A stretch of DNA of 64,000 bases from Klebsormidium nitens (GCA_000708835.1 DF237004.1:7480-71479), one strand, 5' to 3'. Counted from the first letter of the stretch, positions 34,557-41,571 are shown. Notes: generated by a model from the letters alone, not told the origin. Translations and numbers: made by a program.

Positions 34557-35903
34557 CGTGTTGCAAATAAACGCGCGCCTCTCAATTCGAGACATTTCGT
34601 CCCAATTGCTATGACAGATCTGAGAATCTCGTGAGCTCCGATGCGGCCTCCATCTCTTTAAGTACAGAAGGCGCCAAAGAAGTTTTCGTCCTAGTTGCGA
34701 TGGCGCTTCTGAAAGATCTTGTGAGCTCTGGTGCAGCTTCGCAGCTTGTCCTTTCCCCTCGCATAGCGCTTCGTGGCTTCCTTTTTGCAACCCGCTTCGC
34801 TCTCTGCATCGCATAACAGTGTGCGCTGCGTGCTGGCCAGGCGGCCTCCGTCTCTACCACGCTTCGTGCATGCGTGCGCCGCTTGCCAGTGTCCGGACAG
34901 GAGCGCATATACAGCTACTGAAGAGATCACACATGTATGCTGCGAATCAGAGAATGGCACTTGAGTAAATTGGGCCTTAAAGCGACCGGCCACGTACAAA
35001 ATTGTGCAGTAACACTGAACAATTCAGTTGGGCGAGTTGGCACCGGTCACCACTAATTCACGAAGTAATTGACTGCATGAACCGGAACTTCAATTGGAAT
35101 CACGTAAAGCAAAACTGCCGCCTGAGTTTGCAACTGTCGAGCGCAAGATTTTAGCGTACAAGCCACAAGCCACAAGCCACAATATACTTGCTACATGTCC
35201 TTCCATATCCCTGGCGAGCTATATCTTGGCCTGCAATGAATCAAAATTTTGAGGTTAACCCTCAAAATGAGGATCGGGGCCTCAGGATGACGTTGCGATC
35301 CTGCGGATTGCTTGCGCGATCAAAGAAGATGCATGCAATTGGCACCATATTGCATCATCATGCTCGTGCCGGGTTCATTAAGCAGGTCCGACACGAACTA
35401 ATTTACGGTGTTTGCTTCACGTTACCATTGGCTGCAGAAGACTGTGCCCATTTAAGAGGTCTTCACACGAACATATTATGGGCGAGGACCATGATGGCTG
35501 GAATATAGTGACGCCGAACCGGTGCGTGTATCCTTTTGCGAGGGCTAGCTGGACTGTGGCTGGACAAGTTAGATTACCAACGGCCTGGCCTCGGATATGG
35601 ACCAAAAGAAGAAGAGACGATGTTCCCTTATGAAGCCCGAATGGACCACGATTACGCGATTTGCCAGTTAACCTGGACTCACAGTGTCTAAAAGAATACT
35701 CAAATCTATAAGAATCACTCGACAAGGGGCGCAAATCGCCGTAAGAACAAACCTACCTTCGAAGTATAATCCAGACCTCTTAAACCTCCATCTCAAATGC
35801 CAGCCAGCAAAGTCTTAACATGAACCTAGAAGAAGTAAGACCAACATGTCAATGTATCCTAACATATCTCGATCAAAAGACACCACCTTGTCTATTTTCA
35901 GTG

Positions 35904-38900
35904 CTACTCAGGCTTCCTCGCAGTCAAGAATATGTGCAACCTGTTGGTGTTCTGTGTGTATTCTACAAACCCGCACCTCGTCAGCAAGTCCCTGAGCTCA
36001 GGCTCCGTGAAGGGACGCACTGGCAGGGCCTGTACAAGCGGAGGGGCGGAACGAAATTCAGCGTATCGTACATGGCGGAAGTTCGTTATCTAAACCCCTC
36101 TTCCTGACGAAAAGGTCGCTCGCGCTTTGCTGCCAACGTTTGAACCGACCGCTCAAACCGGCTGCTTCCGGCCAAACGGACAAGCCCTAAGCACTTCCAC
36201 CGGTCACCCAACCCGACCTGCCACCTTAGCCCAGCCTTAACCACCCGGCCACCCGACCCGACCCCTGACCTCACCCCTTAACTTTACCCCCGCCAGACCC
36301 TTTTCATTCCCCGGGCCTATCAATCGGCCTTTCTAACAGACAGAATGATGAACTGCCGGTTCCGTGTGCAACAGAAGTCGACGAGGCCGCAAGCGCGGGC
36401 CAAGTCTCGGAGCTCGTCCTCCTTCCACTGCCTGTACGCCGAGTTCGGCCCAAACGTCTGCAGGCAGACACGTGGCTACGCTCAGAGTCCACTACGTGGC
36501 AGGCGGNNNNNNNNNNNNNNNNNNNNNNNNNNNNNNNNNNNNNNNNNNNNNNNNNNNNNNNNNNNNNNNNNNNNNNNNNNNNNNNNNNNNNNNNNNNNNN
36601 NNNNNNNNNNNNNNNNNNNNNNNNNNNNNNNNNNNNNNNNNNNNNNNNNNNNNNNNNNNNNNNNNNNNNNNNNNNNNNNNNNNNNNNNNNNNNNNNNNNN
36701 NNNNNNNNNNNNNNNNNNNNNNNNNNNNNNNNNNNNNNNNNNNNNNNNNNNNNNNNNNNNNNNNNNNNNNNNNNNNNNNNNNNNNNNNNNNNNNNNNNNN
36801 NNNNNNNNNNNNNNNNNNNNNNNNNNNNNNNNNNNNNNNNNNNNNNNNNNNNNNNNNNNNNNNNNNNNNNNNNNNNNNNNNNNNNNNNNNNNNNNNNNNN
36901 NNNNNNNNNNNNNNNNNNNNNNNNNNNNNNNNNNNNNNNNNNNNNNNNNNNNNNNNNNNNNNNNNNNNNNNNNNNNNNNNNNNNNNNNNNNNNNNNNNNN
37001 NNNNNNNNNNNNNNNNNNNNNNNNNNNNNNNNNNNNNNNNNNNNNNNNNNNNNNNNNNNNNNNNNNNNNNNNNNNNNNNNNNNNNNNNNNNNNNNNNNNN
37101 NNNNNNNNNNNNNNNNNNNNNNNNNNNNNNNNCCGAAGAGTTGACACTGCTTGCTCCTGCTGACCGGTGCAAACCCCGCACAACCGTCCAACAAAGAGCT
37201 GAACTTCCACACGGTACAAAAAGAAAGGCTTTGGAGTGATCTGCTTACGCGGCTCAACGTGACTCGCCCTTGTCTGGTTGCAAACCCAAAACGTCCCACG
37301 TTCCAACAGCAGCTGCCTGACACCTTTTGGGAGTTGCCCAAGTTCGCGAGACTTACGATACATGAACATTTCAGGAGTGACTATTTCGAAACCAGAACCC
37401 TAAGACCTTGAAATCGTCAAAGCCTCAAAACCTTATAAGCCACTGAAGGTGACAAGCCAGCCCGTTTCCCAAGCGTTACACTGGATTGCAAAGAAACCCA
37501 CAGAACGCGCGACAAATGAAGAAGGCGACGACAAACTAGAGGCGCGGTAATGTTGAGCCCACCTGGCGGGCTTGCCGTGCAAGCGGGCTGGGGATGGGGG
37601 CACGGGGCGCCAAGAAAGTACTCGCAACGAAGACGCCCCCAGGTCGTAGAACTCGGCTGATCTCCGCTACCTGCCGACCGCAAAAGACCGCATGAGTAAT
37701 CAGATTGCCACTAACTCCGTGGAAAAGCAGAATTAGAGGACGCACACACGTGACTTGCTCTGCAGATTTTAAAGGAGACTCCGCTTCACTGTCAACCTAC
37801 CCGCTCGGCAAAACGCAAAGGAGTCTCCGATGTCGAAATTCTATTCCCAAAACCTCCATGCTTACTTTTCAGCAAGGCAACCCCTCATAACATGCTAACT
37901 ACGCCAAGCAGCCAGGGCCGATAGCCCGGGGTCCAGTGAACCAGTTTTCTTAACCTAGAGGGTCCTAGACCACGTCTTCGTTCGGCTACAGAGTAATACA
38001 CTCAACCGGACACTCAACCGTCCAGATCTTTCCAACATGCGAAGTCGAACCCCCTGACTAGGAACAGGCTTCCCAGGACGTGACTTACTGCTGAGCTGGG
38101 TGACGGCCAGCAATGAAGCGCGGCCCCCGCGTGCACTCCGTCAATCGATCCCGTCTCAAAGGGCAGCCGCCCGACGTCTGCTCGGACCAGCGCAAGGTTT
38201 CTGCGGCAGCATGATAAGAGTGGTTCAGAGTCTGGGAGTCGTCCGTTCTGACCGATTTCAGTCTGATCGCTTTGAGTATTTCCCGACAAACAAACAGTCG
38301 GGCAACACCTCGGCTAGCGCCAAGTCGGCTGGAGTCTGATCTTCGAACAGAAGCTATCCACAGAGAGAGTTTGATCGCTTGCTCGTACATCCGACTATCA
38401 AGTGTCCGTAGCCGTGCCCCAAGTTCGCGTTCCAATTGGAGAAGTCTCGCGTCTAGTTTGAGCAGACCTAGGCTTCATCAAGCCCCTGGCTCCTTGTGAA
38501 TAGAGTCCCGCATCCTCCACGAAGTGGAAACTGCCGCGTGTCCGTTTGTTCAACTAGCATGGGCGCAAAACTCACGCGTCGTCGAGCGTCCGGTCCTGGC
38601 GAATGAAGTCGCGCGTTTGTACGAGCATGCTTTCCGAAAAGTCGGAGCCGATGACGGCAGAGTACTTTCCGCTCGAAGCGAAGCGACGCGTAAAGAGCCC
38701 GCTGCCGCAGCTGACGTCAAGGAGGACGCCGCCGGCCGCAGGCTCAAGGTAGCGCTGCGCCATTACGAACTGCAAGGAGACGGTTGCGGGAATATTGATA
38801 AGCGGACTATAACGAAGCTCTCGGACTGGTTTATGCTTTGTAGAGGGTTGTGAAGAAAGAAATAATGAAAAGGAGGTAGCGCTGCGCCATCACAAACTGC

Positions 38901-41571
38901 AAGGAGACGGTATTAAACAAGTCCTCCGCGGAGCTCGACGAAGCTCTAGGTTTGTTCTACAAATGTGTCCGAGCACGGAAGTTCTATCTGCGCCGTCGCA
39001 AAGGTTTCGGGAGAAGTAAGTAGCCTGGGTTGAGAAACACTTTGAAGTGATCTATGTTCTGTCGAAAATTCAGTGGAAGAAAGACAGGGAGGAAACACGA
39101 GATGCTAAGCCAGTAGGAGCTTCGATGCGTCATTGAGGTGCAGAAAAAACAAACTGCCGAAGAAGAGAGTCGACTTGACTCAATTGAGAAGCGCAATTCT
39201 GAAAAGCATAACCTGGTAAAACGGAGGGGCAAACACACCTCGCTATACGGTCCCAAGCAAACAAACAACTTATTTGTGGAATGGTGGGAGGAACAATCTT
39301 AACCTTGTGACTTAAGTCGACACAGCTCAACTCCTTCCAGCAAACCGAAAGATCCAACAACCTACTAGAATAGCAAGCAAAGACACGAACAAACACCGTC
39401 TCATGACAAGAAAAAGAGAGAGTGAGGGGAAATTTTAGCCCCAGAAAAAAGAAAAAGAATCGATTAATAGGGAAAAGGATTAGAGAGAGATAAAAGATTA
39501 CACACAGGAGGTAGAAAAAACCACGAAAGAAGATACGTATTCTCTCGAAAGAAGTGACGACCTTCAAAAAAGAACGGAAAAAAAAGAAAGAAAGCTAAAC
39601 ATGTCAATCATTCCTGTGCGCACCTCTTGATCCACTCCTGGGAAGCCCGCCTGCGCAAAGCCCTGCCGCCAGCCACGCTCGTACACAAAGCTCACCAACG
39701 GATTCCTGCGGAGTGCACAAGGCACAACATCTCTCTCATGTGGTACTTTGAACTCAGCGCCGATCCCAGCTCCATATAGACTCCAATAAGGCCACACTCT
39801 AAAAAGCCCCTCTTGAACAGCAACGTCTTTGCTTCAGACAAAGGGTGCTCCCTCGAACGAAACTCAAAGCCGGCTCAAAGCGGGCTCTTAAGGACATGTC
39901 TACTGTCACCAATTGCCTGAGCTTGCTCCACCCTAGTTGCTCGCAAAGAGGATAATAAGCGCAGGGACTTGAATGACCGACAACACCCAGACACCGAAGA
40001 AAGCCTTGTTCCCGCAGACGCCAGTCTCAACAGCCTCCTATCTTTCCTCTCAGAACGCCAAACTTAACAGCCTCCTTTCTACTCACCTGAAAATCTGTGT
40101 GCCTGGTGGTAGGAAGTCTGCATACTCCTGCGCTCCTTCCAGGACGGTCAGGTCTGCGTAGCCCTGCTTGCCAGGAAAGGAGCGCTTGCAGCGAGGGCAC
40201 TCAAACCGGGAGGCGTCCACGGCAGCTCTGCAGAGTCAGACCTTGTTTCGAGTCTGTTTAATTATTTCACCACAGACCTTGTTCTGAGTCTCGGTGATTA
40301 GACTTGTGAACCTTATTCTAAGTCTGTTTGGTGGTTACGCTGATGACCCAAAAAGAAGGGGGGGAAAACCAATCCGACACGTTCTGTGAACCAACCTGAC
40401 AAGACCGTTGTTTGATGCTATCGTGAAACCCCAGCAAAGGGGGGAAGCCCTGTACCACCAAGGGCTCTTGATGAGGTTCTTAAGGCTGGGGTATCTATAG
40501 CAAGTTTGCTCAATCTCGAGCTTTGAAGCTCCGCTGATACACGTAAGACCCAAAGACGTAGCCGAACCCCCACAGAGTGGAAAAATAGACTGACAGCCAG
40601 TCCATTGACAAAATACAAATTCAGAAACGTCCCGGTAGGTAGGAACTGCAAGGCTTACCGGCTGAAACCCTCTGGTCCCCGCCTTTCAATTGGCCCATAG
40701 CAGATGGGGCATGCGAGGTCAATTGTCTTGGGTTTCTGTGCTGCTTCTGTTTCCACCTGGAAGAGAATCCCAATGGTTAAGATAGCAAGCAAAGCAGCTC
40801 ATGGCAGCTCCTGCAACAGAGGAGCTGCTCCTTCTCCAAACCTGACTATCACTCTCAAAGAAACTTCAGACTTTTCTGGACTCAGACAAAGCAGTTCAAG
40901 ATGAGGAAAATGACAGGCATGAAAGGGGTTGGGGTGGAAGCAGTGGGTTCAACAAAGACAGAAAGGTAATCGCTGGTTTCAAGTCCGAATCCAACTCCAT
41001 GGTCTTTCAATCCATACCTGGATTGGACATAATAGCAAAGCCGCAGTTTGAGAAAACTGGTGTGCAAACGACTTCCTCTCAAGAGCAAAGAAATCACGCA
41101 CACAAAATTCCTGTACCTCCTAGAAACATACTTCCCAGGTTATATTTTCTAAGTCCCGCTTAGAAGCAATCGGCAAATGCTTGTAACAACAATCAAGGAT
41201 CGAGGAGGATACATCGGGGGATAGAATCTTTTGGATTCGAACCTCGGCGGGTTGCTAAAAGTCCCGCCTGATAAAAACAAGAATCCTTGGGCCCTTACTT
41301 GGGTTACGACAGACTCCGCTTGAATGTCAATCACTTCGCCTGCAACCACCGCTTGTACCACTCCTCGCCTGGCGCTAGCAGCCTCCTGGGAGAAGGAGTG
41401 TCTGGTTTGACCGCGATGTTTTTGAAAAGTTGCTGGCCATCGGAAGCGGAGCTGCCGGCTGAAATCAGGGACAAACGGGAGGACAGGGTGAGCGCTCTCG
41501 GAGTGGCGGGCGAGAGAGGCCTGGAGAGAAAGGCAAGGGACCAGCTTGCGAGCTGTCAAAGAGAGCGCCAT
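35904..41571 (-). CDS. Plastid SAM-dependent methyltransferase (type 11, At2g41040/At1g78140-like, N-terminal CxxC..CxxC); two alternative last exons
   Basis: Exons 41571-41299 (transit-peptide-like), 40756-40659 (LACPIC), 40227-40087 (FECPRC), 39705-39624 (SFVYERGWRQGF..AGFPG), 38769-38576 (LLDVSCGSGLFTRRF), 38200-38089 (HAGAALHCWPSP), 37670-37563 (EISRVLRPGGVFVASTF). Last exon is 36457-36320 or 36029-35904. Confidence 0.9.
36507..37132. other. Assembly gap (626 N) in the last intron of the methyltransferase
   Basis: Run of n characters. Confidence 0.99.

Follow-up and report, generated by a model that had tools for sequence, protein, structure and literature searches.

At the 3' end of a methyltransferase gene in Klebsormidium nitens two coding segments, here called 8a and 8b, lie one behind the other, and either could complete the protein. 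The question raised by this locus is whether one gene, by the choice of where its last intron ends, makes two complete enzymes with different C-termini. The gene lies on the minus strand of the window, which is the whole 64-kb stretch of DNA that was analysed. It was placed in the At1g78140/At2g41040 family by a HMMER search with exon 5 together with a word search using a relative, and is the K. nitens homologue of Arabidopsis PGMT1 and PGMT2, a plastid-type methyltransferase. At1g78140 and At2g41040 are given as the plastoglobule proteins PGMT1 and PGMT2 in a 2025 review (PMC12587418). Since the function and substrates of these plant proteins are unknown according to a 2024 review (PMC11594162), no functional parallel with the K. 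nitens endings can be drawn. The annotated K. nitens protein P0157 (381 aa) matches exons 1 to 7 plus 8a exon by exon, and 8b is absent from the annotation. The features of the gene are as follows, in the order of transcription.

41299-41571, minus strand: exon 1; ATG at 41571-41569, 91 residues, translating as the start of P0157
40659-40756, minus strand: exon 2; first half of the CPxC...CxxC zinc ribbon, with cysteines invariant or nearly so in the family alignment
40087-40227, minus strand: exon 3; translation matches P0157
39624-39705, minus strand: exon 4; YERGWRQ motif, translation matches P0157
38576-38769, minus strand: exon 5; SAM-binding motif I (DVSCGSG), matches to Pfam Methyltransf_25/11
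38089-38200, minus strand: exon 6; the loose contig end at 37670 reads into the end of this exon in all four RNA runs
37563-37670, minus strand: exon 7; ends in phase 0, its donor is common to both endings, and joints from 37563 are seen in RNA
36507-37132, no strand: assembly gap of 626 N inside intron 7; true content three bases (GTT on the plus strand)
36320-36457, minus strand: terminal coding segment 8a; 45 codons plus stop, the default ending and the C-terminus of P0157
36030-36319, minus strand: spacer of 290 nt; 3'UTR in the 8a mRNA, intron in the 8b mRNA, first half G-rich
35904-36029, minus strand: terminal coding segment 8b; 41 codons plus stop, the alternative ending
35560-35903, minus strand: 3'UTR common to both mRNA forms; in all four runs the contigs end at 35558-35583

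The body of the protein is that of its family. Exon 5 scored above the Pfam cut-offs for both Methyltransf_25 and Methyltransf_11 (P0157 also has a precomputed Pfam set), a fold search gave matches to the class I methyltransferase fold at E values of about 1e-13, and C107, C110, C134, C137 and the residues Y179-Q185 are invariant or nearly so across 43 family members. The 91 residues encoded by exon 1 are a probable transit peptide; residues 1-91 have pLDDT values below 50 in the AlphaFold model of P0157, and this N-terminus, disordered as modelled, is the sole hint of a plastid or plastoglobule location. Like PGMT1 and PGMT2, with which it is 45-50% identical, the protein thus combines an N-terminal presequence, a CPxC...CxxC zinc ribbon and a class I SAM methyltransferase domain, and all three share the C-terminal pattern EL..L..CG...(F/Y)...FI...KP. 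They differ in that angiosperms have two genes, which arose by duplication in seed plants, whereas K. nitens has a single gene that carries both endings. Repeats were noted in two of the upstream introns. Intron 4 carries a tandem duplication of about 127 nt (38874-38959 versus 38747-38833; 95% identity over 38 nt, and a further 22-nt block with a spacing of 126) that copies the exon 5 acceptor and the first 24 nt of that exon; the upstream copy is a decoy acceptor which, if used, would put the frame onto a stop after about 20 codons. In intron 2 a unit of about 35 nt occurs three times in tandem (identity 61-100%) at 40237-40334, directly upstream of the exon 3 acceptor.

The original prediction held that two intact, homologous terminal segments could each follow exon 7, which ends in phase 0. 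Their translations proved exactly as claimed, with 45 residues for 8a and 41 for 8b, and a CAG acceptor is present before each. The 8a and 8b peptides share 43% identity across a 37-residue alignment (pairwise E 1e-10), and no similarity was found between the DNA flanks of the two segments. A profile of the family C-terminus was built from 70 homologues with every Klebsormidium row excluded and was run against the 2041 six-frame pieces of the window. It matched two of them, 8a with an E value of 1.6e-18 and 8b with one of 1.4e-13, against 0.8 for the best of the remaining pieces, and since nothing else in the window matches there are exactly two copies, neither of them a chance match. Profile searches found no other exons of the methyltransferase family in the window, and a Pfam scan of 8a and 8b by themselves gave no match, the pieces being too short. 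The pair consists of two adjacent, homologous coding segments in the same phase, which is how tandem-duplicated exons are recognised, and on the evidence of their sequences 8a and 8b are old tandem duplicates.

Both of the junctions predicted for these segments occur in RNA. One search found the stretch from 8a to 8b in 20 runs, and we aligned contigs from four runs of four studies (X1, X3, X11 and X12) to window positions 35300-37750; these runs are labelled only as guessed RNA, but spliced joins in all four show them to be RNA-derived. The joint from 37563 to 36457, leading into 8a, has GT..AG ends and was present in all four runs, at depths of 181, 96.5, 52.3 and 17.6. The joint from 37563 to 36029, leading into 8b, also has GT..AG ends, is in frame, and was present in one of the four runs (X12), at a depth of 13.7 against 17.6 for the 8a joint there, although isoform ratios, like absence, are not readable from contigs. 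The 8b junction is carried by a single contig of 57 letters, found in X12 only, with 26 of them on the 8b side; this falls below the 31-letter bridging rule, 26 being the maximum for a junction contig at k=31, and the corresponding 8a junction contigs in X1 and X3 carry 27. The X12 contigs moreover break at 36003-36032, as expected for a branch of the assembly graph at the 8b acceptor. Rare variants drop out of contigs, and the three runs lacking the 8b joint are uninformative on low-level use.

The same contigs settle two features of the locus that bear on how the choice is made. It had been suggested that further exons might be hidden in the 626-N gap; low-depth unspliced contigs in X1, X3 and X12 refute this, as they bridge 36506 to 37133 with GTT alone between. 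With the gap reduced to three bases, the intron is about 482 nt long when it ends at 8a and about 910 nt when it ends at 8b, and the K. nitens assembly is corrected here in that the size of the gap is spurious. The two segments had also been described as alternative last exons, and here the picture had to be redrawn. Separate 3' ends were not seen. Starting at 36457, the contigs cross the 290-nt spacer and 8b unbroken and reach 35558-35583, and one X11 contig joins 35568-36457 to exon 7, which places 8b in the 3'UTR of the 8a mRNA and gives both forms a single 3' region with a common end near 35560; contig ends of this kind can neither prove a poly(A) site nor rule out a minor proximal one. 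Because the 3' end is shared, the choice is one between a proximal and a distal acceptor within one terminal region and not one between two exons each bearing its own poly(A) site. The folding energy of the RNA over the spacer and the 8b acceptor showed no excess (z -0.16), and we found nothing relevant in the literature on Klebsormidium splicing. A G-rich tract with about ten runs of GGG or GGGG (36190-36310, minus strand) lies in the spacer just downstream of the 8a stop, and could influence the choice of acceptor.

The gene would then work as follows. It would have one promoter and one 3' end, and its intron 7 would have a single donor (37563) and two acceptors. Use of the proximal acceptor at 36457 would yield a 381-residue enzyme ending in 8a, from an mRNA that carries 8b in a 3'UTR of about 760 nt; use of the distal acceptor at 36029 would remove 8a with the intron and yield a 377-residue enzyme ending in 8b. 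The 8a stop codon makes the two endings mutually exclusive. Both forms are known from RNA and sequence, and the proteins themselves are predicted ones.

We compared AlphaFold models, made from family alignments, of P0157 for the 8a form and of a natural protein with an 8b-type end (P0158, from a relative described below) for the 8b form. In the former the last helix spans residues 349-358 and is followed by strands at 361-369 and 372-379, with C-terminal pLDDT values of 95-98; in the latter the helix spans 263-272 and the strands 276-283 and 286-292, with values of 96-98. Either ending is thus predicted to complete the class I methyltransferase fold with a last helix and a beta-hairpin. The fold search returned small-molecule and lipid SAM methyltransferases, and a sequence search of solved structures concurred. 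On these models the swap would exchange a core element bordering the substrate side and leave the SAM site unchanged. A Phe of the penultimate strand that is conserved in the family is replaced by His or Ser in the 8b types (by His in K. nitens 8b), and this replacement is a candidate for a functional difference between the two enzymes.

Two relatives among the Klebsormidiophyceae have genes of this family with an 8b-type ending. In the first (L001; 393-1280 of a 29.5-kb contig from SRR23617307), which encodes P0158, exons 2 to 7 and the 8b-type end form one intronless open reading frame. In the second (L002; 1503-2722 of a 3-kb contig from SRR14092360), which encodes P0274, exons 2 to 5 are fused, as are exons 6 and 7 and the 8b-type end; between these blocks intron 5, which L001 has lost, is still present, with GT..AG ends and with its position and phase homologous to those in K. 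nitens. Introns 2-4, 6 and 7 are missing from both. The length of the L001 contig and the retained intron of L002 show that these are genomic genes and not transcripts. In both, the fusion at ...RQ|AL... coincides exactly with the K. nitens junction of exon 7 and 8b, the endings are identical to 8b at 26-27 of 41 residues and to 8a at 12-14 of 43, and an acceptor-like site before exon 2 is seemingly kept. No trace of 8a was found in the L001 or L002 locus, nor was any relative found that carries both segments, and a word search with the 8b-type tail by itself (P0158:232-295) gave no candidate. When C-termini were put into a tree, 8b grouped with the endings of L001 and L002 in a clade (SH-aLRT 98) in which the 8b end branch was very short; a clade uniting 8a with the 8b type, which would bear on the date of the duplication, was on 46 columns neither supported nor rejected (p-AU 0.51).

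A tblastx comparison of L001 with the window found no synteny outside the gene itself, so that an orthologue and a dispersed copy are not separable in this case, and L001 could be a retrogene. Whichever it is, the sequence of the fusion indicates that the ancestor of L001 and L002 made an mRNA in which exon 7 was spliced to 8b. The K. subtile transcripts P0001 and P0151 (EukProt TRINITY_DN2932) end early, one of them after exon 5 (...TLNSE) and the other inside exon 7 (...VASTL), and as they stop before the C-terminus they cannot show the ending used by that species. The K. subtile protein is 76% identical to P0157, a value that may, for two Klebsormidium, reflect distant species or a paralogue.

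Comparison with these relatives also bears on the claim that an old duplication has been kept by selection. Between 8b and the L001 and L002 endings dN was 0.24-0.26 and dS 1.4-1.8 (dN/dS 0.13-0.18), the ratios being rough because synonymous sites between K. nitens and the two relatives are saturated (dS at least 1.3, or undefined); between L001 and L002 dS was 0.63-0.86. Elsewhere in the gene dN was 0.22-0.33 for exon 2, 0.31 for exon 7 and 0.07-0.11 for the core exons, so that 8b is comparable to exons 2 and 7 and lies above the core exons. The low value for 8b partly reflects selection in the lineages of the relatives, but neutral drift on the K. nitens branch would give a dN of about 0.7 or more, and probably stops or frameshifts too. 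The sole length difference between 8b and its counterparts is an in-frame indel that leaves K. nitens six residues shorter in the loop before the helix. The low dN and the intact frame together argue that 8b has remained coding through most, if not all, of the period after the split. The claim is supported as regards the age of the duplication and purifying selection on 8b; for 8a, which was compared with distant homologues (47-55% identity), it may hold as well.

It had further been proposed that 8a is of the At1g78140 type and 8b of the At2g41040 type, so that one gene would supply by splicing what angiosperms encode as two paralogues. A quick tree comprising 86 members of the family showed the At1g78140-type and At2g41040-type clades as sisters within the seed plants, the split between the paralogues lying above ferns, lycophytes, bryophytes and streptophyte algae; in it L001 and K. 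nitens were sisters with a support of 100, among the streptophyte algal members and beside Chara. When aligned with family members, each of the two segments falls at their very C-terminal end, 8a being the more canonical. The best family match of 8a was Spirogloea (23 of 43 residues identical, against 20 of 43 for Chara), and 8b was about 40% identical to all endings outside the Klebsormidiophyceae. With two Andrographis proteins for comparison, 8a scored 95 against the At1g78140 type and 49 against the At2g41040 type. Chlorophyte and charophyte endings likewise score higher against the At1g78140 type, and since they share this bias the likeness of 8a to At1g78140 is a shared ancestral character; it holds as resemblance and fails as homology, because the paralogues split within seed plants. 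For 8b the scores were 62 and 70, which amounts to no real preference, and its nearest kin are the L001 and L002 endings. The equation of the two endings with the two angiosperm paralogues is therefore not supported, as the split of the paralogues long postdates the branching of Klebsormidium.

On balance we think it likely that the choice between the proximal and distal acceptors of intron 7 gives two complete enzymes with homologous helix-hairpin ends, the 8a form being the default and the 8b form minor or conditional yet functional. Three other explanations have to be set against this. One could suppose that 8b comes from another gene or a paralogue, or that it is an artefact of the assembly beside the N gap, which lies 50 nt upstream of 8a; relatives do have intronless genes of the 8b type. 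Yet the RNA contigs match 35558-36506 without a mismatch and cross the gap with three letters, the window is free of other exons of the family, and the genes of the relatives, at 73-84% DNA identity to that of K. nitens, cannot be the source of the reads. The 8b joint itself leads without a mismatch from the exon 7 of this gene, which also disposes of a separate paralogue as the owner of 8b, and we find an outside or artefactual origin barely credible. It would also be conceivable that the distal splice mainly tunes the mRNA, cutting its 3'UTR from about 760 to about 345 nt and thereby altering stability or translation, the change in coding being secondary. A 3' end common to both forms and the unusual length of the 8a 3'UTR, which holds the G-rich tract, agree with this explanation, but it leaves unaccounted for the family C-terminal pattern of 8b, its open frame and low dN, as well as the 8b-only endings of the relatives. 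For these reasons we rate it as very unlikely.

A more serious competitor, though still an unlikely one, is that 8b in K. nitens is relic sequence in the 3'UTR whose acceptor is hit by splicing noise, and that the resulting protein is without a role. The 8b joint is missing from three of the four runs, whose contigs cross 36029 unbroken, the endings of outgroups are closer to 8a than to 8b, and 8b, with its shortened loop, no longer has the conserved Phe. Against this, the depth of the 8b joint in X12 is above the level of noise, thin as a single contig is for evidence, the frame of 8b is intact with only an in-frame indel, its dN of 0.25 falls far short of what neutral drift along one branch would produce at this dS (about 0.7 or more), and its end branch is very short. 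A functional 8b would be in keeping with purifying selection and with its being the only ending left, fused to exon 7, in the related Klebsormidiophyceae. These two algae, with the 8b-type end only and a fusion at the exact junction, form an unusually clean evolutionary control, and their fused ends support the view that the alternative mRNA is old and that its product works.

Under the acceptor-choice reading, the fusion of exon 7 to 8b in the relatives would most likely have come about when the gene recombined with a cDNA copied from the 8b mRNA, an event that would have removed the introns. Such a loss of introns agrees with the exactness of the joins, with intron 5 still being present in L002 and with the acceptor-like site ahead of exon 2. 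More tentatively, one may picture a single gene giving two enzymes with a common SAM site but a different last helix and beta-hairpin, in which the 8b form is switched on by particular conditions, and sister lineages that copied the spliced 8b mRNA back into the gene, so that it became their sole product; this fuller account is possible but somewhat doubtful. If it were true, the locus would be a natural record of an isoform becoming a gene, and either ending would be sufficient for function. As it stands, an unannotated isoform is added to a conserved plastid enzyme, and the paired endings offer a natural handle on the role of the C-terminal hairpin in PGMT-type enzymes.

Alternative homologous C-terminal exons are known from other systems, an example being the exon 9 variants of vertebrate tropomyosin. 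The K. nitens segments resemble these and other mutually exclusive exons in being adjacent, homologous and compatible in phase, with one of them used for the protein of each mRNA. They differ in what makes them exclusive, which in K. nitens is a stop codon together with a shared downstream region and not incompatible splice sites, competing RNA pairings or separate poly(A) sites. To our knowledge, few genes of the green lineage have been documented to use tandem-duplicated homologous exons; the alternative use of such exons is thus already known, and the K. nitens methyltransferase is a new, unannotated case of it. Intron loss mediated by reverse transcripts, in which a gene recombines with its own cDNA, is likewise an established model. 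As this model has it, L001 and L002 are without most introns, at exact exon-exon joins, with intron 5 kept in L002. What would set them apart from the usual case is the template, which would have been the isoform that is minor in K. nitens, so that the alternative exon was deleted along with the introns.
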